Under the pieces are notes generated by a model. That model did no database searches. It worked only from the letters and a program-made list of their open reading frames with translations, and was not told the origin of the DNA. Below are positions 22,479 through 57,630 of a stretch of 64,000 nucleotides of DNA, one piece after another. A program made the position numbers and the translations under genes. Positions within the stretch are counted from its first letter, which is position 1, and the number at the start of each line of letters is the position of its first letter. The stretch is taken from sequence record OU509535.1; one strand, given 5' to 3'.

Positions 22479-22844
22479 ATGAGTATATATAAACAAACGA
22501 TCAATGAAGGTAAAATTGATAATCTCTATCACAGAAATGTAACTAAACCAGAAGTACAGAGTATTAAAAAATCATCTGAACTTAAATTGCTCAGAAGTGG
22601 AAGTGTAACTGAAATAACACTGGATGATAAAACATTTCAGGTTTATGATGCACATAAGATTCATAATATTATTACGTTCGTTGAACGACATGAAGATAGT
22701 ATATTCAATTTAAGACAAGATAATAATAATCTTAAAAAACAAATACAAATACTATCAAAGAATATTCAAACATTACAAAGTACTGTTACAAAATTACAGG
22801 AACAATTAAAAAATGCAGGATTCAGTTCAAACAACTACTTATAA
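22479..22844 (+). CDS. Coiled-coil hypothetical protein (121 aa)
   Basis: Heptad C-terminus; N-terminal TINE|G candidate protease site. Confidence 0.6.
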   Translation: MSIYKQTINEGKIDNLYHRNVTKPEVQSIKKSSELKLLRSGSVTEITLDDKTFQVYDAHKIHNIITFVERHEDSIFNLRQDNNNLKKQIQILSKNIQTLQSTVTKLQEQLKNAGFSSNNYL

Positions 22845-23454
22845 AAAAGCAAGAACCGACATTGACATTGATGTAAAAGATGCAAAAGAAGTAATAAGTA
22901 TTCTTCCTTGTACAAGGAGTACTGAAAAAATTAATGAAAGTGGGTTAATCGTTCATAATAGTGGAGTTCATTTTGATAATATTCCTGTTGATCCTGTTAC
23001 TGGGTATAGTAGTATTGAATATAAAAAAGCCGAACAATTAGGGTATCAAAAAGTTGATATCCTTTCTAATTCAGCTTATAAGTACGTGAGAGACCGAGAA
23101 CATTTAATTGAACTCGTTAATAAAGAACCACAATGGGATTTATTGCTGATACCAGAAATAGTAGAAGAATTGTCACATATTAAAAAACACATTTCACTTC
23201 TTAATGTATGGAAACCACAAAGCATAGATGAACTGGCAATGTTTATTGCCATGATTCGTCCGGGGAAATACAAATGCCAAAGTATGAATTCATGGGATGA
23301 AGTACGTAAAGAAATATGGGATTACAGTACTGTACCAGTACAGGCAGATGGTAAAAAGGTAATGTATTTCAAAAAACCACATGCTTACGCGTATAGTTTT
23401 ATGATTGTGGTGCAATTGAACGCATTAGTTGAACACATTATGTCCTCTTCTTGA
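22813..23454 (+). CDS. dnaE: DnaE (Pol III alpha)-like minimal catalytic fragment, C-part
   Basis: TDIDID, HNSGV, KVDILSN, AMIRPG and FKKPHAYAY occur in DnaE order within only 213 aa. Confidence 0.8.
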   Translation: MQDSVQTTTYKKARTDIDIDVKDAKEVISILPCTRSTEKINESGLIVHNSGVHFDNIPVDPVTGYSSIEYKKAEQLGYQKVDILSNSAYKYVRDREHLIELVNKEPQWDLLLIPEIVEELSHIKKHISLLNVWKPQSIDELAMFIAMIRPGKYKCQSMNSWDEVRKEIWDYSTVPVQADGKKVMYFKKPHAYAYSFMIVVQLNALVEHIMSSS

Positions 23455-23794
23455 GAGCAACATTTCTTCGTTTAATTCGTTTTTGCGGTAAATCACTTAA
23501 AGATGTTTGTGGTCCACTGATGAATTTAATTTGTGGTGTATCGAAACGCTTAGTATAGTTTTCAAATTTTTCCATTTCTTCCTGGAAAAATAAACATACT
23601 GGAATCAGCCTATTACTCTGAAACCACCAGTCTTCTGCTAACTGGAGTATTTCCTCTCTTTCTTTTTTAGACATAAGATCCAAGCAATAGAGTGTTGTGT
23701 ATTTGGTACTCTTTATTTTAATTATCCCAATGTAGGTATTTTCGTTGTGGTCGAGTACTGTAATGTATTCGGGAAATGCTTGGTATTGATTCAT
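23438..23794 (-). CDS. Conserved hypothetical protein (118 aa)
   Basis: GGAAG SD and a perfect TATAAATA on the minus strand upstream. Confidence 0.7.
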   Translation of the reverse strand: MNQYQAFPEYITVLDHNENTYIGIIKIKSTKYTTLYCLDLMSKKEREEILQLAEDWWFQSNRLIPVCLFFQEEMEKFENYTKRFDTPQIKFISGPQTSLSDLPQKRIKRRNVALKKRT

Positions 23795-23802
23795 ATCACT
23801 TC

Positions 23803-23840
23803 CATAAATATTATATAGGTTTTAGTATTAAGTATTTATA
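23803..23840. promoter_or_regulatory. Face-to-face divergent late promoters: CATAAATA (+, 23803-10) and TATAAATA (-, 23833-40)
   Basis: Each TAAATA core points toward a gene that starts beyond the other core. Confidence 0.55.
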
Positions 23841-23854
23841 GAAGGAAAATATTA

Positions 23855-24832
23855 ATGTCTCATAGTGGCGTATATATGTACCCATATAATCAGGAAGTAT
23901 CATTAGGAAATTTCAATATGCCATTTCATAATGAGAAAATTGTTATATACAGAGGTGCGAATAATAATTTATCCTTTACAATCCATAATGCTGATGGAAA
24001 ATATACAAAAATAAAAGACAATGAATATTTGACATTCATGATCTTCGATGCAAGAAATAATAGTATTTTATTTAATACTGTACTTGATAAACAAATTCCA
24101 TCGTGGTTATCTGAGAGTGGTCAGGCACGACAATCACTTGGTAATAAAGAAAAAGTTTATTATGGTTGTGTTGTTCCTGCTGGTGTTATTCAGGATACTA
24201 GTCCAGGTTTAAAATATCGATGGAGTATTGTCAAAACTACTATTGATGGTTCTCTTCTTGAACCCACTCAATATTTGTATACTGGACTTGATTATGAAGC
24301 ATATGGTGAATTACAAATTTCAGATAAAGCTGCACCTGTGTTTGTCCCCAGTACTGAAGTTTCTAAGGATAAAAATTCTTCATGGAAGTCTATCAAAGAT
24401 AGTTACAGAGAAGTTATCAGTGATTCTTTAAAAGGTGAATATGATGTAATGTGTACTTCTCCATTAGCAGCACAAATGCAATATGGGTTAGTTGATGGAT
24501 TGAGTACAATTGCACTTTATACTGATAATTTTATTGGAAGAATACAATTACAAGGTTCACTTGAAAATAATGTACCGTCTGATGCAGAGAATTACAAATG
24601 GTTTATTATTAAATTAGATTCAAGTGAATACATTCAAAATAGTATAGATGAAAATGGATTCATTATTCCTATGAATGGAATACAGACATTTAATTTTAAA
24701 GGCAATTATATGTGGTTAAGAGTTGTGGTATGTATTCCACCAATCGAGTATACGGTTCCTTATGATTATAATACTGTGCGTAAAGAATACGATCCATTAA
24801 AAACACTTCCAAAAATATTGATTCGTCGATAA
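23855..24832 (+). CDS. Probable virion structural (tail/baseplate/neck-like) protein, 325 aa
   Basis: Beta-rich, with a late-type promoter; IVIYRGANNNLSFTIHNADG resembles the start of a BppU-like domain. Confidence 0.45.
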   Translation: MSHSGVYMYPYNQEVSLGNFNMPFHNEKIVIYRGANNNLSFTIHNADGKYTKIKDNEYLTFMIFDARNNSILFNTVLDKQIPSWLSESGQARQSLGNKEKVYYGCVVPAGVIQDTSPGLKYRWSIVKTTIDGSLLEPTQYLYTGLDYEAYGELQISDKAAPVFVPSTEVSKDKNSSWKSIKDSYREVISDSLKGEYDVMCTSPLAAQMQYGLVDGLSTIALYTDNFIGRIQLQGSLENNVPSDAENYKWFIIKLDSSEYIQNSIDENGFIIPMNGIQTFNFKGNYMWLRVVVCIPPIEYTVPYDYNTVRKEYDPLKTLPKILIRR

Positions 24833-24835
24833 ATT

Positions 24836-24864
24836 TGAACAAAAATACCTTTTAGTGATAGAAT
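24836..24864 (+). promoter_or_regulatory. TGAACA-class promoter (TGAACA-N17-TAGAAT, TG extended -10)
   Basis: Directly upstream of the primase-helicase operon. Confidence 0.65.
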
Positions 24865-24890
24865 GTTTTTATCAAAAGAAGGAAAACGAG

Positions 24891-25949
24891 ATGAATCAAG
24901 TTCAAAATATAGTATCTCAAATTTTTAAAGACCCGGTGCCAGCGATAAACCAGTGGAAAAGACATAACTGTCCTGCTTGTGTTTTTCGTGGTCAGGGTCG
25001 CCCAGATACAAGAGGACGTGGAAATCATATGTTCAATGCTGATGGTGGTATTGCATATAACTGCTTTAACTGTCATTTAAAAGTGTCATGGGTTCCTGGT
25101 TTATATATGAGCAAAGATTTTAAATCTTTGCTTTCTTATTTTGGGGCTGATGAAAAAAGTATTGCATATTTAGATCTCTTCGTTAAAGAAATGGTCAATA
25201 ATGAAGAATATAAAAAAGAAACACCATCCTCTAAACTATTTCAAAATTTACAAACAAGATCGTTGCCAGAGAATGCAAAAACATTTATAGAATGGGCTAA
25301 TACTGAACAACCACCAAAGGAATTCATTTCAGTACTAAATTCCGTAAATTCAAGAAATCCATATATTCTGGATTTGGACTTATACTGGAGTCCATCTAAA
25401 GAGCATCAATTATATAATCGATTTATTATACCTTATTATATGAATAATAAAATAATTGGTTATACTGCTCGTCATAAAGAACACAATCCCACCAAGTCAT
25501 TGCGATATATAAACCAAGTCAGTACTAATATTTTATATAATTATGATTTATTAAATGATAACAGAATTAAAACGATTTTAGTTACCGAAGGACCAATTGA
25601 TGCCGCATTGATGGGTGGTGTAAGTGCAAACAACTATTTTTTAACTTCTCCACAGATTGAATTATTAAAAGCAGCACAGGAACGTGGTAAGAAAATAGTC
25701 ATTGTACCTGACAGGGATAAAAATGGATTGGAAGCAGTAAATCAGGCAATTGATAATGGGTTTAGTGTTTCATTACCAAATTTTGGAACTATTAAAGATC
25801 CAACCAAATTCGGACACAGACCAATAAAAGACTTCGATGAAGCATGTGTTATATATGGAAGAATATTTTGTTTACAATTAATACACGATTCAATACTAGA
25901 TACTGAATTTTCAATCAAAACAAGAATTGCAAATTCATGGGATATATAA
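24891..25949 (+). CDS. 61: DNA primase (gp61-like; zinc ribbon plus TOPRIM)
   Basis: CPAC...YNCFNCH zinc motif, TOPRIM TEGPIDA and PDRD; ATG at 24891 follows AAGG. Confidence 0.88.
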   Translation: MNQVQNIVSQIFKDPVPAINQWKRHNCPACVFRGQGRPDTRGRGNHMFNADGGIAYNCFNCHLKVSWVPGLYMSKDFKSLLSYFGADEKSIAYLDLFVKEMVNNEEYKKETPSSKLFQNLQTRSLPENAKTFIEWANTEQPPKEFISVLNSVNSRNPYILDLDLYWSPSKEHQLYNRFIIPYYMNNKIIGYTARHKEHNPTKSLRYINQVSTNILYNYDLLNDNRIKTILVTEGPIDAALMGGVSANNYFLTSPQIELLKAAQERGKKIVIVPDRDKNGLEAVNQAIDNGFSVSLPNFGTIKDPTKFGHRPIKDFDEACVIYGRIFCLQLIHDSILDTEFSIKTRIANSWDI

Positions 25950-25963
25950 AATAAAGGAATATA

Positions 25964-27532
25964 ATGAACAAATCAATCACACCGGACGTGACTCAATATA
26001 GTATTAAAAATCAAGAATATCTTCTTTCTCAAATTTTTACAAATCCAGATTTGTATGTACGTTGTAAAAATATCTTAAAACCTGAATATTTTGATAAGAT
26101 ATTTCAAAACAGTATTCAGTACGTTCATGAATACAGTAATAAGTACAACGGTGGTTTCCCAACTCTACTTGATATTGAAGTTAAAAGTGGATTTCAATAC
26201 ACTGAAATTAAAGTATCTGAATTAAACAAACAAGCTGTATTAGATCATTGCGGTGAATTTTGTCGTCATAAAGCACTAGCACTTGCAGTTGAAAAGGGAA
26301 TGGAATTAGTTCAACAAAAAAAATATGGTGGTATTGAAGAATTAATTCGTGAAGCCATGCTTGTTACTGTACAAAATGAATTAGGTCTTGATGTATATGA
26401 AAACCCAGAGGAAACAATCCAGTCACTTAAAGATATGCAGGGTTCGATGCGAAGTGGATGGGATACTCTTGATTTCAAATTATTTGGTGGTTTTGGTAAA
26501 CAAGAACTTGAAATATTCGCAGCGGCAAGTGGTGGTGGTAAATCGGTTGTACTACAAAATATCGCAGTTAACTTTTCCAAAATGGGATTAAATGGTGCAT
26601 ATATTTCACTGGAACTTGCAGAAGAACTGGTTGCGGTTCGTATCTATGGTATGATGACTGATACTAAACTGAGTACAATCAAAAGCGATGCAAGTAACAT
26701 TGGTATGAAAATCGCCATTGATGGTAAACAGTCTGGATCACTGAGGATTAAGCGTTTACCAGAATCGATTACAACTTCTAATGATATCGAAAGTTACATT
26801 AGAGAATTACAAATAAAAACTGGGATTAAACTGGATTATATTTGTGTGGACTACTTAGACTTGATGACCTCGGAACGTAGTACTGATGCATCAAACGTGT
26901 TTGTTAAGGATAAATTTGTATCAGAAGAATTACGTGCCTTAGCACATACTATGGACATGACTGTATTCACCGCCGCACAGTTTAACCGTAGTGGTATTAA
27001 TGAAGAAAAGAAAAGTCAGGCACAAATTGCAGGTGGCATGTCAAAGATTTATACTGCTGATAACGTAATTTATATCGAAACTAATAAAGATAAAGGTGAA
27101 CTTTGGTTTGACTTCCAGAAAACTCGTAACAGTTCTGCTGTAGGTTCAAAACTTCGTATGTCTTATAATATGGACTCTCTTCGAGTACTGGATCATGCAC
27201 AAACAATTCAGGAGCTTGAGTGTAATAAGAGTGGTTTTAAGCTCACACAGAGTACTATGGGTGTTGGTGGAGGCTCAGTGACACAACCCCCTTCGACTAT
27301 GACAAGTCTTCGCCACAGCCTTTACAATGCAAATATGGGGCTATCTCAACCAGTTGAAGTTGAACACAATGTAGACAACACAAGTGTACTAAATACTGAC
27401 AATGAGGATGTTTTAAATTCACCAGCATATGAAAATGAAACAATTGAAGAATTTGAAATTGTAGAATCGGTGCAGACAAAACTTTCTCCAAGTAAAATTA
27501 GTAATATGAGAGACTTTTTAGGGAAGAGATAG
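25964..27532 (+). CDS. 41: DnaB-like replicative helicase (gp41-like)
   Basis: Walker A AASGGGKS, ISLELAE, VDYLDL, TAAQFNR, KTRNS; long low-complexity C-terminal tail. Confidence 0.92.
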   Translation: MNKSITPDVTQYSIKNQEYLLSQIFTNPDLYVRCKNILKPEYFDKIFQNSIQYVHEYSNKYNGGFPTLLDIEVKSGFQYTEIKVSELNKQAVLDHCGEFCRHKALALAVEKGMELVQQKKYGGIEELIREAMLVTVQNELGLDVYENPEETIQSLKDMQGSMRSGWDTLDFKLFGGFGKQELEIFAAASGGGKSVVLQNIAVNFSKMGLNGAYISLELAEELVAVRIYGMMTDTKLSTIKSDASNIGMKIAIDGKQSGSLRIKRLPESITTSNDIESYIRELQIKTGIKLDYICVDYLDLMTSERSTDASNVFVKDKFVSEELRALAHTMDMTVFTAAQFNRSGINEEKKSQAQIAGGMSKIYTADNVIYIETNKDKGELWFDFQKTRNSSAVGSKLRMSYNMDSLRVLDHAQTIQELECNKSGFKLTQSTMGVGGGSVTQPPSTMTSLRHSLYNANMGLSQPVEVEHNVDNTSVLNTDNEDVLNSPAYENETIEEFEIVESVQTKLSPSKISNMRDFLGKR

Positions 27533-30005: not shown

Positions 30006-30977
30006 ATGGATATTCAACAAACATCACAAGAATTACAAAAATTTGCTGATTCTCAGGGAATGAATATTGATGTTTCTACTGTACTTGATAATATGGATGC
30101 TGGTGATTTCGTGGAATTGAATTCGGCTATCGACTCTAACAATAATCAAGAAATTTTTAAAATTCTTCAAAAATATAAAGCACGTATGAGTGAAAGTTTT
30201 GAATATTTTAGTCCAACATATGTACTTAAATACGTAACCGAAAATTCAAAACTAAAAGAAATTGATAATTATAGTATTAAAGAATTAAAAGAAGCGTATT
30301 CAAAATTCAGTACATATGGTGATATTTCAGAATTTAGTACTCAGGAATTAAAAGCATTAGTGTATGAAGATATAACACAGAATGCTACACAGCTTAATGC
30401 GTTAAAAACTAGTAATATTGCACAACAAAATCTACAACAGCAACAACAACAAATTAATCCACAGACACAGGCTAAAGTTAAACAAGCAGAATTGCAAAAA
30501 GGTACGGGTAATATGAAAGTATCTGTTCCTGGTCAACAATCTGGTACAGATGAAATTGAACCCCTTGTTGGTATTGATGTTGGACAAACACCACAACAGA
30601 CATTGGTTGTTACTAAAAGTGGTTCTAAACCAAATCAGGTTAATATATTTGGTCTAGATGACGTCACCCCAGTTCAGGAATCAAGAAAACTAATGGATGA
30701 CATTGATAAGATCTGCACAGAAGAAAAATCTGTACAAGAGATTAATGCAGAAACTAAAAATGTTGCTCCGCCAGCACCTGAACAAAGTGGAACGCCATCG
30801 CCAGTTACTTATACTGCTCCTGGTATGGGTGAGTTTATTCATTCAGTACAGGACGTTCCATTTGAAGATGATTTCAGTGGAGAAGAAAGCCCATTAGGAA
30901 ATTCTAAATTTGAACAGAATGATGAAATTGTTAACGATATAATTGATTTATGTAATCGAATGGATAATAGAAAATGA
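30006..30977 (+). CDS. Probable head-core/internal virion protein (about 323 aa, Gln-rich)
   Basis: ATG at 30006 follows AAAGGA; multiple [VM]-x-E sites (MSE, VTE, VYE, VQE); polyQ stretch. Confidence 0.5.
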   Translation: MDIQQTSQELQKFADSQGMNIDVSTVLDNMDAGDFVELNSAIDSNNNQEIFKILQKYKARMSESFEYFSPTYVLKYVTENSKLKEIDNYSIKELKEAYSKFSTYGDISEFSTQELKALVYEDITQNATQLNALKTSNIAQQNLQQQQQQINPQTQAKVKQAELQKGTGNMKVSVPGQQSGTDEIEPLVGIDVGQTPQQTLVVTKSGSKPNQVNIFGLDDVTPVQESRKLMDDIDKICTEEKSVQEINAETKNVAPPAPEQSGTPSPVTYTAPGMGEFIHSVQDVPFEDDFSGEESPLGNSKFEQNDEIVNDIIDLCNRMDNRK

Positions 30978-31168
30978 GATCTATAAAAACCGACAATGGT
31001 TATAGTATTATCCTTAGTAATGAAGAGTACTCATTATATAGAAAAATTAAAGCTAGAAAAAAAATTCACGAAGAATCTCTTCCTGAATATTATCAAGAAC
31101 TCGCCAATAAACTGGTATCAAGGGGTGTTCTTGATAAAACTGAAGATAATATATATACAGTAAAATAA
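30974..31168 (+). CDS. Hypothetical protein (64 aa)
   Basis: ATGA overlap with the upstream gene. Confidence 0.6.
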   Translation: MRSIKTDNGYSIILSNEEYSLYRKIKARKKIHEESLPEYYQELANKLVSRGVLDKTEDNIYTVK

Positions 31169-31192
31169 TACAATGTAATTAAAGGAAGTTAT

Positions 31193-31846
31193 ATGAGTTA
31201 TTATTCTGATGATTATGAACAAAATAAGAAGGCTAAATCAGAAATTTCTGATTTACTTACTGACTTGTATGATATTGGTTTTTATGATAAAAATGATATC
31301 CCACCACCGGTAAGCACAGCACCTGATTATGGTTATGATTATATTACAGAAGGTGTACAAGGTACTTATTCACTGGATGAAAATGGTATTCCAGTTAATG
31401 TAGTACAACCCACTATCCCAGAACAGTACTATACTGAACCTGTTATTCAAAAACCAAAAAATACTAAAAAATGGGATTTAGTTGAAGATCACTATCCAGG
31501 TACTAAAAGTACTAAAGTCTATAGTATTAAATGTAATTCAAATGACCAAATTATTATGAATAACATTTTAATGCACGAAGCCGCTTTAACTTTAGTAAAT
31601 CTTTTAAATGAAGGTAGAATGTTAACTGATCCAAAAATTCTTGGTATAATCAGCAGTGGTATTCAATTTACTTCAGTTATGAATGAGGTCATAAAAGTAT
31701 CAAAAGAACGTCTTGTGGTACTAAATGAAGCTCGTTATGATGATGCAAAAGAATTGGATGTAAAAATTGCCGAAAAGAAAAATGAAGCATATAAACTGAA
31801 AAAACGTGTACTGGATTTTCTAAAAACTGAAGGCTACATTAAATAG
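31193..31846 (+). CDS. Hypothetical, probably virion-associated protein (217 aa)
   Basis: AAGGAAG SD; ITE|G site; lies in the head-core cluster. Confidence 0.55.
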   Translation: MSYYSDDYEQNKKAKSEISDLLTDLYDIGFYDKNDIPPPVSTAPDYGYDYITEGVQGTYSLDENGIPVNVVQPTIPEQYYTEPVIQKPKNTKKWDLVEDHYPGTKSTKVYSIKCNSNDQIIMNNILMHEAALTLVNLLNEGRMLTDPKILGIISSGIQFTSVMNEVIKVSKERLVVLNEARYDDAKELDVKIAEKKNEAYKLKKRVLDFLKTEGYIK

Positions 31847-31863
31847 TACTTCAAGGGAATGAA

Positions 31864-33597
31864 ATGAAAAAATATCTGAAAAATTTAGATACAGAAACAG
31901 AAAATCTATTTAATGAAATTCGTTCATTACTAAGTAACAAAAATAGTAAATCATGGCATACCTCAATAAATGCTTCTGGAAGGGAGCATTTAAAAAACGC
32001 GGTACTCAGAGTCTATCCAAGTAGTGATTTTTTATTATCAGAAGCATTAAAACTGATTATCAATCAAGAAGAACCACCGTATGCAGTATGTGGTAGAAAA
32101 TGTAAGTATTTTAATGGTCAGTATGATAGATATTGTTCATTGGGTGTCAAACCCAATAAAAACACTTATTGTGAGAAGTGCAATAAACACTGGCGAGAAA
32201 AGAAAAACAAATCCACAAAAGAAAACTGTCTAAATCAGTACAATGTTGAACACCCTTTTCAGCGAAATGATGTGAAAACAAAAGTACATGAAACTAAAAT
32301 ACGAAAATACGGTACTAATTATAATAAAATAATTTCAAACAAATCATTCAGTACTTATTATAATAAAACTGGATATTCATGTCCATTGAGTAATCCAGAT
32401 ATACAACAAAAAATTAAAGAAACTAATATTAAAAATTATGGATATGAAAATCCCGGTTCATCTCCATTAATTGTACAAAAAAGAAAAAATACCCAGAAGA
32501 AATTATATGGTCATGAACATTCTATGCAGAATGGTGATATAAAACTAAAGGTATTGATTAAATCTGCCACACAGAGAATGGATAGTATAAATTCAAAACT
32601 TGAATTTACTAATTTTATTCCTTTGTTTGATATTAGTGATTTAATTGGTTTGGATACATATAACAAAATGCCATACTGGTGTAATACACATGGTTTATTT
32701 TATTCATGTAGTAATTATAAAATTATATGTAATGAATGCACTCCCGTTCATATAAGCACACAACACAAAGAGATATTAAATTTTATAGAAAATCTTGGTA
32801 TTGAATGTGTAACGAATACACGCTCTGTTTTAAAAAGTACTATGGAATTGGATATTTTTATACCTGACTTGAATGTTGCAATAGAAATTAATGGTATGTA
32901 CTGGCATAGTACTGAATACAAAGAACGACTGTATCATCAAAACAAAATGTTGGAATGTAAAGAACATGGCATTCACTTAATACAGATATGGGAAGATGAA
33001 TGGAATACCAAACAAGATTTGGTTAAATTTCGTTTGATGAATGTATTAAAATGCTCCAGTACTATATATGCAAGAAAATGTAAAATAAAAGAAATCAATA
33101 AAAAAGAATGTGATAATTTTATTAATACATACCATATCCAAGGTTCTAGTTCATCATCTATTAGAATTGGTTTATATTACGAAAATGAATTATATGCAGT
33201 TATGACATTTGGAAAATCCAGATTTGATAAAACTGTTCAGTATGAATTGATACGATATTGTTCAAAAAGTACAGTCGTTGGCGGTGCATCTAAATTATTA
33301 AAGTACTTTGAGAAGAAATACAAACCAGTGTCGTTGATTTCTTATGCAGATGCGTGTTGGAGTACTGGTGATTTATATATTAAACTTGGTTTTACATATA
33401 ATGGATTAACTGAACCTGGTTATTTTTATTACAAATCAAGTACTGGTAGAATTTCAAGGCATCAATGTCAAAAGAAAAAACTAGTCAATCAGGGATATGA
33501 TGAAAATTTATCAGAATATCAAATATGTACCACTGTACTTAAATATAACAAAATATTTGATTGTGGTAATTTTAAATTCACTAAATATTACATATAA
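31864..33597 (+). mobile_element. Free-standing PD-(D/E)XK homing endonuclease, copy 2
   Basis: ELDIFIPDLNVAIEINGMYWH, ARKCKIKEI...YHIQG...YELIRYC; same architecture as 27813. Confidence 0.8.
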
Positions 33598-48310: not shown

Positions 48311-49228
48311 ATGCCTAGTAAGAGTCAATCACAAGCACGATTATTTGCAGCAATGGCACATGATCCAGAAATTGCAAAACAACATGGTGTTTCTATGAGT
48401 ACAGCAAAAGAATGGAATAAATCAGATGTAGAAATGGGTAATCTAAATAAGAGTTCTAAATTACCAAAGCATACAAAGAAAGAAAAGACTGAAGAAAGTT
48501 CTACTCGTGATATTCTGGATTATCTCAATAATCTGGAATTACAGGACGAAATAGAACAAGAAGAGAAAGCGGTACAGTACAGTACAGAACGCTCTAGAAT
48601 GCATCAAGAAGGCTGTCAGTGCGACGATTGTTCCAATAATGAGCACCACTATTACCCTGATGTACAACACGCCCAGGATTGCTCCTGTGATGATTGTGCT
48701 TCACATGTTGAGTTACAGGAAATGCCACAGAGATTTGATGCATTTGCTGGACAAGACCGAGATGAATTCGTTGATAAAACCGCTGAAATGACAGGCAGAC
48801 ACAACATGGTTCCATTTGCTGAACATGCTGATTATACTGTGTATAAAAATAAAAACGGTTCAGGGTTTATTGCTTATGGTAAAGATGGTAAACAGCTTGC
48901 AGTACTTAGTGGGTATGTGAGTGATAATGCAGTACATGGAGTACCAAATGTATTTGTTGAAGAAGCAATTGCATCCAAGACTGGTACTAAGGGTGTAATT
49001 TATACTATTTTCACTGATCTGTTAAATGCAGGATATAAAATTTTAAGTGATGAATTACATTCAGATGATGCAATTGCTTTTTGGTCTAAATTGATTTCAT
49101 CTCATCAAGTATATGTGGTTGGTGACGGCGAAGTACTGGCTCGTGCTAATACTCAAAAATTACACAAGTATTGGAGTTCAGATGAAACAAGTCCAAGTGC
49201 AGAATTACGTTTATTACTAGTAAAATAA
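48311..49228 (+). CDS. Multidomain protein: basic N-terminal module, duplicated His/Cys metal motif, C-terminal GNAT-like domain
   Basis: MPSKSQSQARLFAAMAHDP; HQEGCQCDDC / HAQDCSCDDC; KGVIYTIF..L..G..ILSDELHSDDAIAFWSKL. Confidence 0.5.
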   Translation: MPSKSQSQARLFAAMAHDPEIAKQHGVSMSTAKEWNKSDVEMGNLNKSSKLPKHTKKEKTEESSTRDILDYLNNLELQDEIEQEEKAVQYSTERSRMHQEGCQCDDCSNNEHHYYPDVQHAQDCSCDDCASHVELQEMPQRFDAFAGQDRDEFVDKTAEMTGRHNMVPFAEHADYTVYKNKNGSGFIAYGKDGKQLAVLSGYVSDNAVHGVPNVFVEEAIASKTGTKGVIYTIFTDLLNAGYKILSDELHSDDAIAFWSKLISSHQVYVVGDGEVLARANTQKLHKYWSSDETSPSAELRLLLVK

Positions 49229-49231
49229 AAA

Positions 49232-49251
49232 ATGGGAGCTTATGCTCCCAT
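49232..49251 (+). terminator. Hairpin terminator followed by CATAAATA and a TGAACA promoter
   Basis: ATGGGAGC-TTAT-GCTCCCAT. Confidence 0.65.
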
Positions 49252-49260
49252 AAATATTTT

Positions 49261-49289
49261 TGAACAAAAACATTAAAATCAACTATAAT
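49261..49289 (+). promoter_or_regulatory. TGAACA-class promoter (TGAACA-N17-TATAAT)
   Basis: Upstream of the topoisomerase operon. Confidence 0.7.
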
Positions 49290-49325
49290 TTATACGTTAT
49301 AACAAAGATACAAAAGGATTTAATA

Positions 49326-51293
49326 ATGGCTAAGAAACAAGAAAGTTCAGTACTTCAAGAACATGATGTACAACGCCTTAATGATTATCAACATGCTCGT
49401 CTACGCAGTGAAATGTACTTAGGTTCAAGAAGTATCCATGAAAGTCAAGTTCTCATTTTTGGGGAAAATTCATACCAAGTTACTAACATGGAATGGGTGC
49501 CTGCATTACTCACTGCATGTCGTGAATTATGGGATAATTCACTTGATGAGTTTAAAAAAGCCGGTACTAAAGAACCGGTACTTAAAATTGAATTTGATGA
49601 AAATGAATTAACATTCAGTTGTATTGATAATGGACGCGGTATTCCGATTGATTATGTTCCAGATTTCAATACTAATCTCTGTACTATGGTAATGACTGAA
49701 ACAAAGACTGGCAGAAACTTTGATGATTCAAAGCGTGATGAAACTATTGGTCAAAATGGTCTTGGTGGATCCGTGGCAATGCTTGTAAGTTCTAAAGCTG
49801 AAATGGAAATACATCGAAAAGGTCGTCCATATAAAACATCAGTGTCCAATGATTCATATGATGGATTTTATAAATTCAGTCAAAATTTTAAAGAAGGTAC
49901 TGAATTTATTCCAGAAATTCAAATTTCTGAACCAGTAATTAGAAAAATTAGTTCTGATAAAACAGGAACAAGTATTAGACTAACATTTAGTCCTTCTGTA
50001 TTTCCTAACAGAAAATTACCAATTGAACTGTTGTATAGCATTCTTAAAGAAATGGCATCAGCAAATCCAACATATAAAATCTTTTTGAATAATAAACGAA
50101 TTAATGTTAAACCAACTCCAGAAAAAACATTATTTAATGCATCTAAACTAATGCAACTAAATGTTAACGATGAATCTTTTAACTTTAACAGTACTTTTTA
50201 TATTATTCCAAATGCTGTTAATAATATGAATACTAATTTTCATATGCATGGTTTAGTTAATAATGCACCAGCGTTCGATGGTGGTACTCATCTAGATACA
50301 TTCAAGAAACATTTTTCACTTGGTATTGCTAATGCTCTTGAAAAAGAAGCGAAGAAGCGTAAGATGAAGCCAAACCGTTCAGATATTGAAGAAGGGCTTC
50401 TGATTTATAATGTAACTACAATGAAAGCACCTTCATTCAATTCACAAATTAAATCCAAATTAACTAACGAAAATGTAGTTAAACCAATTCAACAAGCAAT
50501 GAGTACTGAATGGTTCGAAGAATTAGTTAAAAAGAATAAAGATTGGGTTGATGAAATATTTGAACGTTGTGCTGCACGTACAAATAAAAAAGATGCAGAA
50601 GAAGATCGTCGTCTTGCTAAAAAACTTCTTAAAGGTAAAGTTGCCAAACTACTTGATTCAGTTGGTACTGATCGTTCCAAATGTATTCTAATGTTGGCAG
50701 AAGGTGATTCTGCTATTTCTAACATGGCTAGTGCTCGTGATCCTAATATTCATGGTATCTTACCTTTACGTGGTAAAATTATGAATGTGAGTGGTGAAGA
50801 GAAAACAAAAGAATTAATGGATTCTGATGCATTGCATGATATCATGGCTAGTATTAACCTAGTTCCAGGTGTGAAGGCAAATCGTGATGAATTGAGTTTT
50901 GGTAAATTATACATAGCAACGGATGAAGATACTGACGGCCTTAATATAGCCGCATTGATTTGTAATTTTCTTTATAAATTCTGGCCTGAACTATTTCAGG
51001 ATGCCGATAATCCGTTTGTGTATGTATTCAAAACTCCATTTATTATCCTGGAGAAAGGGAAAGAATCAAAATACTTCTATGGTTATAATGTTTCTGAATA
51101 CAATCCTGAAGATTGGAAGGGTTGGAAAGCCACACGTGCAAAAGGATTAGGAACATTGGAAAAGAGTAATTTCAGAGACGCATTCACCAATAGTGTAGCG
51201 GTTGCAATTACCGATGATGGTAATTTAGGTGAAACTCTGGATTTGATATTCAATAAAAAGAGAGCAGATGATCGCAAAGCATGGATGGCTTAG
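49326..51293 (+). CDS. 39: Type II DNA topoisomerase large (ATPase plus TOPRIM) subunit, gp39+60 fused type
   Basis: GHKL ELWDNSLDE, DNGRGIP, GQNGLG; TOPRIM LAEGDSA, PLRGK, ATDEDTDG, KGLG. Start is the ATG at 49326. Confidence 0.93.
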   Translation: MAKKQESSVLQEHDVQRLNDYQHARLRSEMYLGSRSIHESQVLIFGENSYQVTNMEWVPALLTACRELWDNSLDEFKKAGTKEPVLKIEFDENELTFSCIDNGRGIPIDYVPDFNTNLCTMVMTETKTGRNFDDSKRDETIGQNGLGGSVAMLVSSKAEMEIHRKGRPYKTSVSNDSYDGFYKFSQNFKEGTEFIPEIQISEPVIRKISSDKTGTSIRLTFSPSVFPNRKLPIELLYSILKEMASANPTYKIFLNNKRINVKPTPEKTLFNASKLMQLNVNDESFNFNSTFYIIPNAVNNMNTNFHMHGLVNNAPAFDGGTHLDTFKKHFSLGIANALEKEAKKRKMKPNRSDIEEGLLIYNVTTMKAPSFNSQIKSKLTNENVVKPIQQAMSTEWFEELVKKNKDWVDEIFERCAARTNKKDAEEDRRLAKKLLKGKVAKLLDSVGTDRSKCILMLAEGDSAISNMASARDPNIHGILPLRGKIMNVSGEEKTKELMDSDALHDIMASINLVPGVKANRDELSFGKLYIATDEDTDGLNIAALICNFLYKFWPELFQDADNPFVYVFKTPFIILEKGKESKYFYGYNVSEYNPEDWKGWKATRAKGLGTLEKSNFRDAFTNSVAVAITDDGNLGETLDLIFNKKRADDRKAWMA

Positions 51294-51296
51294 GAT

Positions 51297-53007
51297 ATGA
51301 AACATGATGAAGTAGTTAGTATAATTAAAAAATTTGCCAATGAAGTCAAGTCCAATGGGGAATCAGTACTAAAGCAAATTAAAAAGATGGATAGATATGA
51401 AGAAGTTATTTCATATCTAAAAAGCTATTATGGTGACTATGATATTAAAGTTCTAATTGGTTCAGTACTAAATGATTTAGATACCATTCCCATTGCTGCT
51501 TGTGGGAATGTATGTAGATTTGATGGATTAAAATTGAGGTACGTATGTACCTCATATAAAATGAACAAAGAAGAAACATGTCCTGAGTGTCATATTAAAT
51601 TAAAAGAAATAATGAACAACAACAGAATGCAATCTGTGGAAATGAAGTACGGTACTCCATATATATCTAAAGTTCCAGAATTTAGAGAGAAAGCAAAAAA
51701 TACAATGTTTAATGAGTATGGTGTATATAATATTTCTAATTTGGATTCTGTGAAAAAGAAAAAAAGTGATAATTATCACAATAAAAGTTTAGAAGAAAAA
51801 GAACGTATTAAAGAAAAAAATAAGAAAAAAGTAATACAGACATATGGTGTTGATAACGTATCTAAATCTGAAATTGTAAAACAAAAGAAACTTGGTAATA
51901 AAAATCCATTCAATAATAGTACTTTTAAAATTAAAAATATCATTAATACAACCAAACGAAGATATAATAGCATAACAGACTATTTAAAAACCAATGATAA
52001 ACCATATACACTAACTTACATGCCATTTGCATATAAAGATGACCATGTATTTCAATGTAAGTGTGGTGAAATTATAAGTTGTAAAATACAATCGTTTGAT
52101 ACAATACGTTGTTATAAATGTTTCCCATTGGAAGTAAGTTCTGGTGAACTTTGGTTGAGACAAGAAATTGAAAATATTATAAGTAATACATCAACAAGTA
52201 CTGAAATGTTATTAAATCAAAGGTATGATTTTATTGATAACATAGAAATTGATATATACTTACCTGAATTGAAAATAGGTTTTGAATTCAATGGTTCGTA
52301 CTGGCATAATGATGAACACAAAGATAAGTACTATCATCAGAAGAAATCGATTTCTGCAAAAAACAATGGTATCAATTTAATACATATCCATGAATCTGAT
52401 TATAATAAAATAAAAGATAAAATTGTAATGAGATTAAAACATGTATTAAACAAAAATGATAAAACAATTTATGCAAGAAAATGTATTGTAAAAGAAGTAT
52501 CATTTAAAGAAAGTGAAGTATTTTTGGATGAATATCATTTTCAACAATCACGTGTATCAGGTATAAGAATTGGATTATATTATGATAATGAATTAGTAGC
52601 ATTGGCTACGTATGGAAAATCCAGATATGACAAAAAATATGAATATGAATTATTGAGATTCTGTACCAAGTATTCGGTACCGGGTGGATTTAGTAAAATA
52701 ATGAAATACTTTGAGCAAACATACAACCCTAAATCATTGATGACATATGCCGATCTGGACTGGAGTAATGGTAATGTTTATGAAAAAAAATGGGTTTGAG
52801 TTTGTGAAATACACCGAACCAAGTTACTTTTACGTGGATAAATATCAAAATAAAATTTCAAGATATGATTGTCGTAAAACTGAATTATTAAAACTATATG
52901 ATTGGGCTACCAATGATATGACGGAAACTGAAATCTGTAAAAAATTAAATTACAATAAAATATATTCATCTGGAAATATAGTTTATCGTAAAATATATAA
53001 CAAATAA
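51297..53007 (+). pseudogene. PD-(D/E)XK homing endonuclease, copy 3, frameshifted near its 3' end
   Basis: EIDIYLPELKIGFEFNGSYWH. The A8 run at 52783-90 breaks YEKNGFEF, and the C-terminus matching copies 1 and 2 continues in the 52747 frame. Confidence 0.78.
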
Positions 53008-53022
53008 CAAAGAGGCAATGGA

Positions 53023-54429
53023 ATGGCTAAAAAAGAAAAAACTCAAGGTATTGATAATGCAACATTAACGCTATTAGATTACAACAGTTCTGAATATTTG
53101 AATAGCACTTCACTAGAATATTCAATGTATACATTAGATCGTGCTATTCCCGGAATTGATGGTCTAAAGAGTTCACAACGAAAAGCAATTTTTACGCTAA
53201 GTAAAATATCAGGTGAAATTAAAACAGTATCATGTGCTGGTCGCATGATTAGTGATGGTATCTATTTACATGGTGATTCATCTGCAAGTGGTACACTACA
53301 ACAACTGGCATCACCTGTAGCAAACAATTATCCACTCATTGGTAAACGTGGTGGTTTTGGTACACAGGTAAACAGTACACCAGCATCCCCGCGATACACA
53401 TATGTGAAGAAGAACAAAAGTACCGAAGAATTAATTCTTCGTGATATGGAAATTATTCCAATGCAAGAAAACTATGATGGTACCACTATGGAACCAACAC
53501 ATTTTCTTCCAATCATTCCATTATCGTTGTTTGGTAATGACAGTATGTCGGTTGGTTATAAGAGTACAATTCTTCCTTATAAAATTAAAGATATTATTGA
53601 TAACTGTATCCGTGTTATTGATAAAACTGAACTAAGAGAAATGATCCCATATTATGTATCAGTTGGTGCAAGCGAAACTGTAACTAAACTTGATGAAAAC
53701 AAATATGAGTTCTATGGAACAGCAGAAGTTATTGATGCCAGTACCGTAAAAGTTACTGGATTGCCACCCAACTATAGCGTTGAAAAATTTGTTGAAAAAT
53801 TAATTAAGATGGGTGATGATGGTGAAATTCGTGATTATGATAATGGTAGTACTGATACCATTGATATAACGATAAAATTACCACGTGGTACATCAAGCAA
53901 ATGGACTGAAAAGGATGTGATTGATTATTTTGGTCTATCCAAGAAAATTACACAAATTCTTACAGTACTCGATGCGAATGGTCGTGTTCGTGTATATGAT
54001 AACACTTCTGACCTAATTAAAGATTTCGTCGAATTTCGTTTTGGCTATTACATTAAACGTTATGAGAAAAAAGTTAAAGATTGTACTGAAGAAGTTATAT
54101 ATAAAATTCTAATTAAAGAATGCTTTGATAATGATATGATTGGTAAAGTTAAATCATTTAAGAATCGTGCTGAGTTAGTTGATTTTGTAACTAAACTCAA
54201 TATTGATATTGGGGCAAGTGAAGATAATATTCAAAGCATAGTTAATTATCCTTCTTATCGCTGGACACAAGAAAACTATAATGCAGTATTGAAAGATATT
54301 CAGGATAATATGGATTTAATTGATAAGTACAACGATTTACTTAATAATAAAAATAAAATTTGGGATATCTACAAAGAAGAACTTAAAGAGCTTCGTAAGA
54401 TTGATTTTACACCAAAACAAGAAAACTAA
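53023..54429 (+). CDS. 52: Type II DNA topoisomerase medium/breakage subunit (gp52-like)
   Basis: RAIPGIDGLKSSQRK, YLHGDSS, catalytic ASPRYT. Confidence 0.93.
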   Translation: MAKKEKTQGIDNATLTLLDYNSSEYLNSTSLEYSMYTLDRAIPGIDGLKSSQRKAIFTLSKISGEIKTVSCAGRMISDGIYLHGDSSASGTLQQLASPVANNYPLIGKRGGFGTQVNSTPASPRYTYVKKNKSTEELILRDMEIIPMQENYDGTTMEPTHFLPIIPLSLFGNDSMSVGYKSTILPYKIKDIIDNCIRVIDKTELREMIPYYVSVGASETVTKLDENKYEFYGTAEVIDASTVKVTGLPPNYSVEKFVEKLIKMGDDGEIRDYDNGSTDTIDITIKLPRGTSSKWTEKDVIDYFGLSKKITQILTVLDANGRVRVYDNTSDLIKDFVEFRFGYYIKRYEKKVKDCTEEVIYKILIKECFDNDMIGKVKSFKNRAELVDFVTKLNIDIGASEDNIQSIVNYPSYRWTQENYNAVLKDIQDNMDLIDKYNDLLNNKNKIWDIYKEELKELRKIDFTPKQEN

Positions 54430-54440
54430 TAATAAAGACT

Positions 54441-54502: not shown

Positions 54503-56830
54503 ATGGAAAATTTTACTCCTTTATGGGATATAAAATCGGAATCTGAATTTATTCAAGAGAGTGCTGACATATTAGTAACAACAAATATTAATAAAGATCC
54601 AGATGATAAAAACACTTCGTATGTTCTCAAGGACGGGGAATATATACTAATTCAGTTTCTAATAGAAACAAAAAATAAAGATGATACCAGTTTTGTGGCA
54701 GAAGACCATTATACGTTGTATGCCGGTGAAGATGTTAATAATTTGAAAAACATAACCACTGGTATTACTAAAAATAAATCAATCGCAGGAAATCACTATG
54801 CTAAATTAACAAAAGAGCAATTTGATTTAATTGATGAAAATACATCACCCATCTGGTATTTCAAATTACATTGTAAAAATAACGGAACATTTGATAGTAT
54901 TGAAATTACTACATTTACAATAGTGAGTGTAACTCGCGTTTCTCCATCTGATAGCATTACCATTGGTACAATTACAACCAGTTCACAATCTATCACTTAT
55001 AACAGTACTGAATTTTGGGTAACTCCCGGTGTAGTTGTTGGTGATGATAACAATAATTATTGTATAGGTGATATTAGTTTCGGTAATGATAGTACTCTGT
55101 TTGTACAGGCGTTTGGTCGTAAAGTACCAGGAACCACACCGAGAGTATTTTATCCAATTTATCGTTTAATGTCTATTACAGAAGATGAATTACCACAAAC
55201 TGATATTACTGGAAAGAGAGCAATTCTTTTTCCACAAAAAGAAGAATTCCCAATTACTGGCAATAACAAAGAAGTGAAAGTGAACATTCTTGATGAAACA
55301 ACAAAAACCTATGATACAGGTTTGGTGTTCAATCCAAATGGACAATTCTTACAAGCATTTTTATATGATTCATCACCATATGATTTGTATTTTAAAGTTC
55401 AAATACAAGATATAGAAAGTTCGTATACTAATGATAGTGAGCGTTATGCAATTTCACAAAGTTTTAAATCCGGTCAGATGTTTTTATGTCCAAGTGAATT
55501 TGATTTCATTTATTCAAACGATGTTCCAGTCGCTAATCATTTATATCAGTTGAAATCTGGTGTTACTTACCCATATGTTGTTGACAGTGATACAGAAGAC
55601 GGTTTGGAAAAACCCGTATTTAATAGTGATGACTGGGTTGATCTTGGTTTGTATGATAAAACACTGGGTACAGGGATTATTGGTGAAACAAAAATATTCA
55701 GAATGCTTGCAAACTCTGGTACTTCTGGTAAAATTAGTTTTATTACTGATAGTGATTTGGGTACTATTCATGTAGGTGAATATTTTGGTCACAGTACTTA
55801 TCCTGTTATTGAAACAGATTCTGAATTTAACGTATCTTTTAAAATAGTATCAGGTTCTGATATTACAAAATATGGACTTGAATTAAAACCAAATGGTTAT
55901 TTATGTGGTACTGCGTATGCTAAAAGTACTGATTTCACTGCAAATGATGATATCCCACTCGAATTTGAAGTTGAGGCTTATGATACTTCTGGTCTGAGAA
56001 ATACAAAAACATTCCAATTAAGAATTATTCGTGGATTTGGAGAAAACTATATAAGTTCACATTTAGTACCATCTGTACAATTCGAAAGAGAATGGTTTAA
56101 ATGTATTAGTTCTACGATATTTGGTAATCAGCAATTATTCAGAATTTCTGACGAACGATATGGGTTACAAAAAGTTCCGCGTATTCTATTAAAAGAGAAT
56201 TATGTTTCACAGGATTATAATTATAATACACTAAAAGAACTAAAAAGAGTACTAAGGAAAAATATTATTGATGAAAATAATATCCCACAAGGTACTTTCA
56301 ATTTAGTAATGGGTAATTACAAAGTACTATCATGTCTTGACAATTTAGGAAATTTACAGTACGATTTATTATTCAGAGAAGTACACCCATCTGGTTCTAT
56401 TATTTCAGTAAGTAATAATCCAAGAAGTTATTCGATTAAAAATTATACTTCTTTGACTGAAGTTTTTGGTTTAAGACAGAATTTGTTCAATGCTATTGGA
56501 GAAGACACTACCAATCTCATAACAGATCCAGATGATTTGAATAACAGGGGGTTATATGTAACGGGTTTGGACAGTTCACAAATGCTCGATACCGTTCCTC
56601 GTTTCATGAATCATCCATATGAAGGTGATGGTCTTAGTTCTGAATTCATGGTATTAATACCGGTTGCTTACTGTTTGCCGGGTAAAGGCGATGATTTGTT
56701 CTATAATCTCTATCAAAACAATGAGCACAAACTTATGGTAGGTACTGAATTTGAAGTTCCAGCAGTTGAATTTATTACTCATGTTGGCTATATGAAGGAA
56801 AAATTTCAAATTATTTTACAAAAATCTTAA
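54503..56830 (+). CDS. Large virion structural protein (baseplate/tail-like, with an Ig-like segment), 775 aa
   Basis: Late promoter, beta-rich T/S/D/G composition, SFKIVSG..GLEL.PNGYLCG Ig/He_PIG-like pattern. Confidence 0.5.
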   Translation: MENFTPLWDIKSESEFIQESADILVTTNINKDPDDKNTSYVLKDGEYILIQFLIETKNKDDTSFVAEDHYTLYAGEDVNNLKNITTGITKNKSIAGNHYAKLTKEQFDLIDENTSPIWYFKLHCKNNGTFDSIEITTFTIVSVTRVSPSDSITIGTITTSSQSITYNSTEFWVTPGVVVGDDNNNYCIGDISFGNDSTLFVQAFGRKVPGTTPRVFYPIYRLMSITEDELPQTDITGKRAILFPQKEEFPITGNNKEVKVNILDETTKTYDTGLVFNPNGQFLQAFLYDSSPYDLYFKVQIQDIESSYTNDSERYAISQSFKSGQMFLCPSEFDFIYSNDVPVANHLYQLKSGVTYPYVVDSDTEDGLEKPVFNSDDWVDLGLYDKTLGTGIIGETKIFRMLANSGTSGKISFITDSDLGTIHVGEYFGHSTYPVIETDSEFNVSFKIVSGSDITKYGLELKPNGYLCGTAYAKSTDFTANDDIPLEFEVEAYDTSGLRNTKTFQLRIIRGFGENYISSHLVPSVQFEREWFKCISSTIFGNQQLFRISDERYGLQKVPRILLKENYVSQDYNYNTLKELKRVLRKNIIDENNIPQGTFNLVMGNYKVLSCLDNLGNLQYDLLFREVHPSGSIISVSNNPRSYSIKNYTSLTEVFGLRQNLFNAIGEDTTNLITDPDDLNNRGLYVTGLDSSQMLDTVPRFMNHPYEGDGLSSEFMVLIPVAYCLPGKGDDLFYNLYQNNEHKLMVGTEFEVPAVEFITHVGYMKEKFQIILQKS

Positions 56831-56843
56831 AAAGGAGTGTATA

Positions 56844-57152
56844 ATGTCTCATCCATTATTTGATGCCAGTGAATTTACAGATAAGGAATTATATGCTAAA
56901 ATTAATGAGCAAATTTTACGTATAGCAAAAGCACGCTCGATTGGTATGAGTGAATCAGTAATTAGTCAAATGCAGATGCTTTTGGATTCTTATTATACAG
57001 AAATTGAAAACAGATCAACCAAAAAGGTTATAAGTAAAATGGAAGATTCAGATCCTTGTGTGTTTGATTTGAGTTCATATCTGGAAGACAACGACGGTGT
57101 GAAGAAGAAAAATGAAAGTACAGGGAAACAGATATATAAGTCCCAATGGTGA
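56844..57152 (+). CDS. Hypothetical protein (102 aa)
   Basis: AAGGAG SD. Confidence 0.7.
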   Translation: MSHPLFDASEFTDKELYAKINEQILRIAKARSIGMSESVISQMQMLLDSYYTEIENRSTKKVISKMEDSDPCVFDLSSYLEDNDGVKKKNESTGKQIYKSQW

Positions 57153-57630
57153 TGTTAAATGTAATCTAAATGCAGTAGTTTATGCCATTAATTGTGGTGC
57201 TGATATTCAGTACTTGCAATTAATGGATTTGGATGAAAGAGAAAGATTACTTTTCAATGATAACTGTAAGAAGTTTGGTTTAGAACAACGTATGTTGGAC
57301 TACACAATAGATCATGAACGTAATCATGAATTATGGTGCTATGATCCATTCTATGATAAAATCAACCTCAAAGAGTTCTTTTTGAGTAAATGTGAAACGC
57401 CAGAAGCAAGAGAGCGAGTTCTTTATGAACTGGAATTGTATGAATTTTACAATATGTCCAAATTACTTCGTTGTATGATTTGGTTGGTTGATTACTTTAA
57501 AGAAAATAATATCTTTTGGGGTTTGGGTCGTGGTAGTTCAGTATCATCTTATTGTTTATTTTTGATTGGATTACATTTGGTGGATTCGTTGAAATACGAT
57601 TTAGATGTTAATGAATTTTTGAAATATTGA
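57112..57630 (+). CDS. dnaE: DnaE (Pol III alpha)-like fragment, N-part of the palm
   Basis: RERVLYELEL...WGLGRGSSVSSYCLFLIGLHLVDSLKYDL..EFL corresponds to DnaE RL..EL...GPGRGSAAGSLVAY.LGIT..DPL.YDLLFERFL. Confidence 0.8.
   Translation: MKVQGNRYISPNGDVKCNLNAVVYAINCGADIQYLQLMDLDERERLLFNDNCKKFGLEQRMLDYTIDHERNHELWCYDPFYDKINLKEFFLSKCETPEARERVLYELELYEFYNMSKLLRCMIWLVDYFKENNIFWGLGRGSSVSSYCLFLIGLHLVDSLKYDLDVNEFLKY

Follow-up and report, generated by a model that had tools for sequence, protein, structure and literature searches.

Two distant genes of a RaK2-type Klebsiella jumbo phage as predicted halves of a minimal C-family (DnaE) DNA polymerase core

A split minimal form of the alpha subunit of DNA polymerase III (Pol III alpha) was described computationally by Iyer, Anantharaman, Krishnan, Burroughs and Aravind in 2021 (Viruses 13:63; PMC7824862) for the 'group 2.2' jumbo phages, with Atu_ph07 named as a member. 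They describe a phage-specific core that accompanies a family B polymerase and consists of two proteins from distant genes, an N-terminal one that binds nucleoside triphosphates (NTPs) and a C-terminal one that binds Mg2+ and the template. Cooperation in strand synthesis or repair was suggested, and the minimal form was proposed as a model of the ancestral C-family polymerase (PMC7824862). A 172-amino-acid (aa) 'truncated' alpha-like protein was noted in phage CBB by Buttimer et al. in 2017 (PMC5259590), and later genome papers merely list the genes as 'DNA polymerase III'. Here we analyze such a gene pair in a stretch of 64,000 nucleotides (nt) from sequence record OU509535.1, referred to as the window. 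Identity of the window is 100% to OU509535 and 99.7% to Klebsiella phage RaK2 (NC_019526); by this comparison, its source is a RaK2-type Klebsiella jumbo phage. An initial annotation of the window had pointed out the split polymerase, which is not a new finding in view of Iyer et al. The split enzyme is already published, and the function-level account given below is a prediction. The refinements added here, for which novelty is not guaranteed, concern the break point between E. coli residues 394 and 395, re-fused variants, a Replicase-linked variant, the steric-gate His, a non-jumbo phage of 141 kb that also carries the enzyme, and the flanking genes.

The two genes in question, termed N-part and C-part, are the following.

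57112-57630, plus strand: N-part of the split mini Pol III alpha, 172 aa, ORF162 of RaK2
22813-23454, plus strand: C-part of the split mini Pol III alpha, 213 aa, ORF124 of RaK2

The genes are separated by 34 kb. The N-part protein ends with ...GLGRGSS...DVNEFLKY and the C-part protein starts with MQDSVQTTTYKKARTDIDIDV. RefSeq names both RaK2 open reading frames (ORFs) 'DNA polymerase' and nothing more, and in PHROGs they fall into two different 'DNA polymerase' families, the C-part matching phrog_11778 with an expectation value (E) of 6e-104. Comparison with bacterial Pol III alpha at the level of sequences and models confirmed the assignment of these genes as the N- and C-halves of one minimal C-family (DnaE) polymerase core, at a level well above chance.

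The N-part matches the Pfam family PF07733 (Pol III alpha palm) with 35.1 bits at a cut-off of 23.9. Only profile positions 18-95 of 260 are covered, where the protein stops, and the matching stretch corresponds to E. coli alpha 318-392. A profile of the N-part family (38 sequences) aligns with residues 321-396 of E. coli DnaE (hhalign, 85%, E 6e-6), and residues 96-172 of the N-part are equivalent to E. coli alpha 318-394. By homology, the N-part contains the first helices and the first strand of the palm nucleotidyltransferase fold and, in addition, the GRGS nucleotide-binding loop, in which R140, G141 and S142 correspond to E. coli R362, G363 and S364. Residues 1-95 form an N-terminal extension specific to the family. 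A search of the PDB sequences with the hidden Markov model (HMM) of the N-part family gave no match. The AlphaFold2 (AF2) models used here were calculated for each half folded alone, not as a complex. For the N-part, the model has a predicted local distance difference test score (pLDDT) of 84, and its 14 top PDB matches are all Pol III alpha or PolC, with E values of only about 0.04.

For the C-part, no Pfam cut-off was reached by the protein alone. The Pfam finger domain was matched with 14.4 bits, under the cut-off of 22, and the same sub-threshold match was obtained for 16 of 35 relatives. The family HMM found no match in the PDB, and a search with the single sequence returned chance-level matches only. 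In local mode, hhalign aligned the C-part family with E. coli DnaE at E 0.018; a global-mode alignment with E. coli alpha 395-800 was unsuccessful. In the weak local alignment the motifs of the C-part appear in the same order as in E. coli alpha, with the following equivalences.

Catalytic DxD strand: C-part D16, D18 and D20, equivalent to E. coli D401, D403 and D405
HxxG strand: C-part H48 to G51, equivalent to E. coli H511 to G514
Third carboxylate: C-part K80 and D82, equivalent to E. coli K553 and D555
RPG motif: C-part R149, P150 and G151, equivalent to E. coli R639, P640 and G641
Steric-gate finger helix: C-part F186, K188, H190 and Y194, equivalent to E. coli F756, K758, H760 and Y764

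The AF2 model of the C-part has a pLDDT of 92.8, and each of its ten top PDB matches is a Pol III alpha. Six of them, the best, were found with a probability of 1.0 and E values of 2e-3 to 1e-2, with query-normalised template modelling (TM) scores of only 0.46-0.49. Because the colinear motifs, the matches of the model and a fused-homologue profile that crosses the break (see below) point in the same direction, we consider the assignment of the C-part sound.

According to ungapped offsets, Y172 of the N-part corresponds to E. coli P394 and Y10 of the C-part to E395. At this junction the canonical chain is complete with zero residues lost, and the C-part carries nine extra N-terminal residues. 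The break is located within the Pol-beta-like nucleotidyltransferase core, between the GRGS loop and helices contributed by the N-part and the DxD strand contributed by the C-part; it is intra-domain and not at a domain boundary. Consequently, judged from homology, the catalytic sheet must come from both chains. Further parts of the canonical protein are lost elsewhere. Approximately 78 residues of the thumb region are gone between the equivalents of E. coli D405 and H511, and approximately 80 residues of the fingers between the RPG and FxKxH motifs. The C-part chain ends near E. coli residue 780, and the clamp-binding/HhH, OB and tau-binding parts beyond it are absent. Pfam searches of the N-part and C-part gave no match to PHP, HhH or OB domains. 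Since thumb, PHP, clamp-binding/HhH and OB are missing, the pair represents a reduced variant rather than a canonical DnaE. The initial annotation is thus borne out in its structural claims: both ORFs lie where it had placed them, with the end and start sequences that it had quoted; equivalents of D401, D403 and D555 are present; HxxG, RPG and FxKxHAxAY-type motifs of the C-part are colinear with E. coli alpha; the break falls between the GRGS and DxD motifs; and the deletion of the thumb and most of the fingers, together with the absence of PHP, HhH and OB, agrees with motif spacing and Pfam.

Both halves are widespread and strongly conserved. A word-indexed search of metagenome and genome protein collections retrieved 335 C-parts and 145 N-parts, and an exhaustive profile search of 50%-identity representatives gave 522 C-part matches. 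The size range is narrow, with C-parts mostly of 180-220 aa and N-parts mostly of 160-180 aa. Residue conservation was counted in an alignment of 340 C-part and 127 N-part sequences. The catalytic residues D16, D18 and D82 are kept in all C-part relatives that have a residue at the site (337/337), which answers the question of ortholog conservation raised with the initial annotation. R149 of the RPG motif is retained in 336 of the 340 C-parts and the steric-gate H190 (E. coli H760) in 335, whereas for the N-part the RGSS residues R140, G141, S142 and S143 are kept in 126-127 of 127 relatives. The position of the break is equally constant: all 38 aligned N-part relatives end at EFLK, down to 33% identity, and C-part relatives begin 6-20 residues ahead of DxD. 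When the RaK2 type is compared with the PA5oct-like phage Paride, identity is 43% for the C-part and 50% for the N-part core. The corresponding values for the same pair of phages are 30% for the primase, 36% for the replicative helicase and 32% for the clamp loader. Hence, both halves are under strong constraint.

The two genes also occur together. In a phage genome collection, 96 records contain the C-part and 93 the N-part, the genus tallies are almost identical, and about 95 genomes have both genes, so that the halves are not distributed independently, a point on which the initial annotation had made its proposal depend. The phages recovered include RaK2-like and PA5oct-like phages, Atu_ph07 and XacN1. 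Alishewanella phage Slickus01 (L012, OQ508957; 141 kb) appeared to possess the C-part only, until a profile search located an N-part 11 kb upstream (E 3e-17); this phage also encodes a clamp loader and a primase-helicase. Since Slickus01 is not a jumbo phage, the split enzyme is not limited to genomes above 200 kb. The distance between the halves varies considerably.

Slickus01: 11 kb
XacN1: 15 kb
Vibrio phage 2.275.O: 30 kb
RaK2-like phages: 34 kb
PA5oct-like phages: 44 kb
Phosso: 224 kb

A search of 185,579 species genomes yielded 15 loci, all of them in metagenome bins of scattered taxonomy and on contigs with phage synteny. For these reasons a cellular origin of the 15 loci was rejected, and from its distribution the split mini polymerase family is phage-specific. 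One contig, binned as a metagenome-assembled genome (MAG) of Legionellales (L030), encodes a split C-part and, about 7 kb away, a single-chain DnaE-like protein of 565 aa (L030:17637-19334, minus strand). In the latter, a finger domain and a complete PF07733 palm (143.5 bits) are present and a PHP domain is absent. This pair suggests that phages may hold a spectrum of reduced C-family polymerases.

In a few cases the two halves are found in one chain. Two single-chain fusions came from the exhaustive search and two more from a follow-up search. Three of them (P0295, P0390 and P0391) have 375-376 aa, share 78-81% mutual identity and are encoded on three different metagenome contigs. The fourth (P0379), from another contig, has 336 aa and is devoid of the N-terminal extension of the N-part. 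In all four the N-part is followed by the C-part, with a linker of 8-10 residues where E. coli has eight. P0295 matches PF07733 with 59.6 bits at positions 12-121, i.e. across the break, and the fused-homologue profile aligns uninterrupted over the break to E. coli alpha 313-410 (PDB search, E 9e-9; hhalign, 96%, E 3e-9). These natural fusions are gene-fusion evidence for halves that work as one protein. In a maximum likelihood tree of 163 C-part sequences, the clade of P0295, P0390 and P0391 is nested among split forms with values of 96-100 in the Shimodaira-Hasegawa-like approximate likelihood ratio test (SH-aLRT). P0379 was placed in another clade among split forms; its branch is long and its position less certain. 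The fused gene sits at the C-part locus and is followed by the same small reverse-strand ORF. Because the fusions are nested among split forms, the split state looks ancestral for the family, and the tree points to at least one and probably two secondary fusions.

On its metagenomic contig of 8 kb, which contains no obvious jumbo-phage genes, the P0379 gene shares 4 bases with the end of a gene of 552 aa that has PF03090 Replicase-family and helix-turn-helix (HTH) domains (L008:1516-4181). From this single example, both genes together may constitute a minimal initiator-plus-polymerase module of a small element. No further mini forms related to P0379 were detected in a scan of viral contigs or by tblastn against plasmids, which returned full-length dnaE genes only. 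In P0288, which is closely related to P0379, the ORF immediately upstream of the C-part is not an N-part.

Taken together, we consider it moderately probable that the products of the two genes assemble into a single enzyme, a minimal DNA polymerase of the C family with about 385 aa, which would be an obligate heterodimer, use deoxynucleoside triphosphates (dNTPs) and synthesize short patches. In the proposed mechanism, a Pol-beta-like palm would receive its first helices, its first strand and the nucleotide-binding GRGS loop from the N-part. From the C-part would come the DxD strand and the third catalytic Asp, together with the RPG motif and the finger helix that bears the steric-gate His. 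By homology, the halves would form an obligate heterodimer that rebuilds the palm, with a catalytic sheet from both polypeptides, and the finger helix with its steric-gate His would close on the incoming dNTP. For H760 of E. coli, a clash with the 2'-OH of a ribonucleotide was modelled, and the residue is reported to be invariant in Pol III alpha (PMC8485763). The retained His argues for a templated dNTP polymerase over another type of nucleotidyltransferase. Since thumb, proofreading domain and clamp-binding elements are missing, the enzyme should be distributive and restricted to short patches. It would therefore be a template-dependent, distributive enzyme for short DNA stretches that acts beside the B-family replicase of the phage, which is encoded at the beginning of the window.

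132-3134, plus strand: full-length B-family DNA polymerase, T4 gp43-like, 1000 aa; Pfam DNA_pol_B_exo1 77.1 bits, DNA_pol_B 76.9 bits; annotated as gp43 in RaK2

Exonuclease and polymerase domains are both above the Pfam thresholds. The protein is complete, as had been assumed in the initial annotation, and is presumed to be the main phage replicase. The likeliest role of the mini polymerase would be short-patch synthesis at the fork, either by primer extension with subsequent hand-off or by filling of Okazaki gaps.

Further genes of the window that form the context of both halves are listed below.

17575-18396, plus strand: DnaQ/epsilon-like DEDD 3'-5' exonuclease, 273 aa; Pfam RNase_T 46.6 bits; 'DNA polymerase exonuclease subunit' in RaK2
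21729-22475, plus strand: ORF122, 248 aa, conserved; a C2H2-like zinc-finger signature is weakly recognizable; immediately precedes the C-part in almost all related loci
23438-23794, minus strand: ORF125w, 118 aa, function not assigned; overlaps the C-part 3' end tail to tail
24891-27532, plus strand: primase (gp61-like) and replicative helicase (gp41/DnaB-like) according to the RaK2 annotation; two genes downstream of the C-part
58712-59671, plus strand: clamp-loader ATPase (gp44-like) according to Pfam and PHROG matches; about 1 kb downstream of the N-part

The C-part belongs to a block with the order UvsW helicase, several ORFs, ORF122 homologue, C-part, reverse-strand ORF125w homologue, ORF126-like gene, primase and replicative helicase. 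All or most of this order is found in Paride, Phosso, Slickus01 and all 15 metagenomic loci. The section from the C-part through the reverse ORF and the ORF126-like gene to primase and helicase is kept in most of about 20 diverse loci, and the order from C-part to primase-helicase is common to Paride, Phosso, Slickus01 and 12 MAG loci. In RaK2, Paride, Phosso and XacN1, the gene of the clamp-loader ATPase follows downstream of the N-part at a distance of two to four ORFs. By their neighbors, both halves belong to replication modules.

According to BLAST, the C-part of Paride, of Phosso and of all 15 MAG loci is directly followed by an ORF125w homologue in the opposite orientation, and gene calls indicate the same arrangement in Slickus01 and in the fused-form loci L007 and L009. 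ORF125w has no Pfam or PDB match, and Pfam and PDB searches with ORF122 gave no usable match. From their constant position, both proteins could be accessory factors of the mini polymerase. Likewise, the DnaQ-like exonuclease, whose C-terminal stretch shows a weak QSregVF_b match, could be a candidate proofreader in trans; in XacN1 an epsilon-like gene is situated about 2.3 kb downstream of the C-part.

Right after the stop codon of the N-part (57634-57662), a near-consensus sigma-70-like site is present, consisting of TTGAAC, a spacer of 17 nt and TATAAT, with TG before the second hexamer. Judged from this site, the N-part may be the last gene of its transcription unit. Around the N-part, promoter-like sites were no more numerous than in shuffled sequence, and the text of the PA5oct transcriptome paper contains no gene-level timing. 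Three further features of the window are mentioned here. RaK2 ORF115, a 382-aa endonuclease, is represented at 15933-17065 by two overlapping ORFs of 250 and 135 aa, which suggests a frameshift or a sequence difference in the isolate of the window. According to the RaK2 annotation, the gp39-like and gp52-like genes of the topoisomerase II subunits lie on either side of a homing-endonuclease gene (about 48730-53830; RaK2 141067-146169), and a second homing endonuclease is annotated near 30811-32544.

The role at the fork is slightly favored by gene position and by the Replicase-linked fusion, with gap-filling repair nearly as likely. Several observations speak against the proposed enzyme or its role at the fork. 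In statistical terms, the C-part sequence and model resemble Pol III alpha only weakly (hhalign E 0.018; Foldseek E of about 2e-3; query-normalised TM 0.46-0.49), and an enzyme without thumb and with few fingers may grip primer-template poorly. The C-part of XacN1 is not located beside the primase. Moreover, gene order is conserved generally in this phage clade, so that a position in replication modules is weak evidence for a fork role. A B-family polymerase may need no helper, since T4 gp43 extends RNA primers by itself. Finally, full-text literature searches found no biochemical, structural or genetic study of the split enzyme, in line with the initial annotation, which knew of no biochemical work. 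The same heterodimer could instead be dedicated to repair, by short gap filling after base or nucleotide excision or recombination, or by lesion bypass; we regard this as a serious option, albeit an unlikely one. It would parallel Pol X of African swine fever virus, which accompanies a B-family replicase, or bacterial DnaE2. Distributive short-patch synthesis, as suggested by the loss of thumb, proofreading domain and clamp-binding elements, fits repair as well, and the window contains UvsX, UvsW, a RecB-like exonuclease and RNase H/FEN, besides the DnaQ-like exonuclease. Repair is also one option named by Iyer et al. (PMC7824862). However, no specific linkage to repair genes is apparent, the tightest conserved neighbors being primase-helicase and clamp loader, and the fused variant P0379 adjoins a Replicase-family gene and not a repair gene. 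Thus, of the heterodimer with a non-replicative role proposed in the initial annotation, the heterodimer has been strengthened by co-occurrence, identical break and fusions. A purely non-replicative role is mildly disfavored by the location of both genes in conserved replication modules; together with the retained steric-gate His, this points to a templated dNTP polymerase that could just as well act at the fork. A more specific idea, which we consider doubtful, is that the obligate split-fold polymerase is kept split because separate expression, of the N-part with the clamp-loader module and of the C-part with the primase-helicase module, gates its activity. The enzyme would then be a Pol-alpha-like primer extender handing off to the B-family replicase.

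Other explanations depart further from a templated heterodimeric polymerase. The retained core of G[GS], DxD and third Asp is a generic Pol-beta-like signature, and the thumb that grips DNA has been lost along with most of the fingers. Hence a non-templated nucleotidyltransferase could be envisaged, e.g. a terminal transferase at genome ends, an NTP-using synthase of primers or signal nucleotides, or a DNA-modifying enzyme. This is improbable, since the Pol III alpha-specific motifs HxxG, RPG and FxKxHxxAY, including the ribonucleotide-excluding steric-gate His, are nearly invariant and the top structural matches are exclusively Pol III alpha and PolC. It is very improbable that the halves do not form one enzyme at all, so that each alone disturbs the host Pol III or replisome, or that they are decaying fragments of a captured dnaE. 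The genes are indeed 11-224 kb apart in different transcription units, and each half by itself gives a fairly confident AF2 model. Against this stand the near-perfect co-occurrence, the identical break point, the independent natural fusions with canonical order and linker length, and the higher conservation of the halves compared with primase or helicase. The catalytic residues are invariant in hundreds of lineages, for which reason a pseudogene or decay was rejected. Joining of the products after translation by a split intein, or at the RNA level, has a precedent in cyanobacterial dnaE, where the products of two distant genes are spliced by a split intein. In the phage proteins, however, the N-part stops one residue past the EFLK motif and the C-part has only nine residues before the equivalent of E. 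coli E395, which leaves no space for an intein N-fragment (about 100 aa) or C-fragment (about 35 aa). Furthermore, Pfam searches of the N-part, the C-part and the flanking ORFs yielded no Hint/intein family. Such joining was therefore rejected as practically negligible, in agreement with the earlier statement that the break is free of intein motifs.

If active, the predicted heterodimer would be by far the smallest C-family DNA polymerase, with about 385 aa compared to about 1160 aa, and a rare natural enzyme whose catalytic fold is built from two separately encoded chains. As a tractable minimal model, it would allow the chemistry of the bacterial replicase family and its evolution to be studied, with the natural single-chain fusions as convenient starting constructs. 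It also raises the puzzle why a second polymerase is retained, and is more strongly constrained than primase or helicase, in phages whose T4-like replisome is complete.

Compared with bacterial Pol III alpha (DnaE1; 1160 aa in E. coli), the phage enzyme shares GRGS, D401/D403/D555, HAGG, RPG and the steric-gate helix in the same order. Structures of this protein (pdb entries 2hnh, 5fku, 2hpi and 3e0d) are the top structural matches of the phage halves. In contrast to it, the phage enzyme has one third of the size, consists of two polypeptides and is devoid of a PHP domain. The split DnaE of cyanobacteria is likewise a C-family polymerase from two far-apart genes, but its halves carry intein fragments and are spliced to a full-length chain. 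The phage enzyme differs by the absence of an intein and by a break within the palm core, and its chains must stay separate. A possible analogy for the proposed function is DnaE (DnaE3) of Bacillus subtilis, a second C-family polymerase beside PolC that extends RNA primers and hands off. This protein is full length, clamp-binding and experimentally characterized, whereas the partner of the phage enzyme is of the B family and the analogy is drawn from gene position only. Pol X of African swine fever virus (174 aa) offers another possible analogy as a highly reduced polymerase of the Pol-beta fold that fills short gaps beside a B-family replicase; it is a single-chain enzyme of family X instead of C, and its role in repair has been demonstrated by experiment. 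The closest relative is the split Pol III alpha of the group 2.2 phages (Iyer et al.), which is the same entity with no difference in kind: two small proteins, distant genes, a family B polymerase and T4-like replisome genes are all present, and the set of phages recovered here (RaK2-like, PA5oct-like, Atu_ph07 and XacN1) fits that description.

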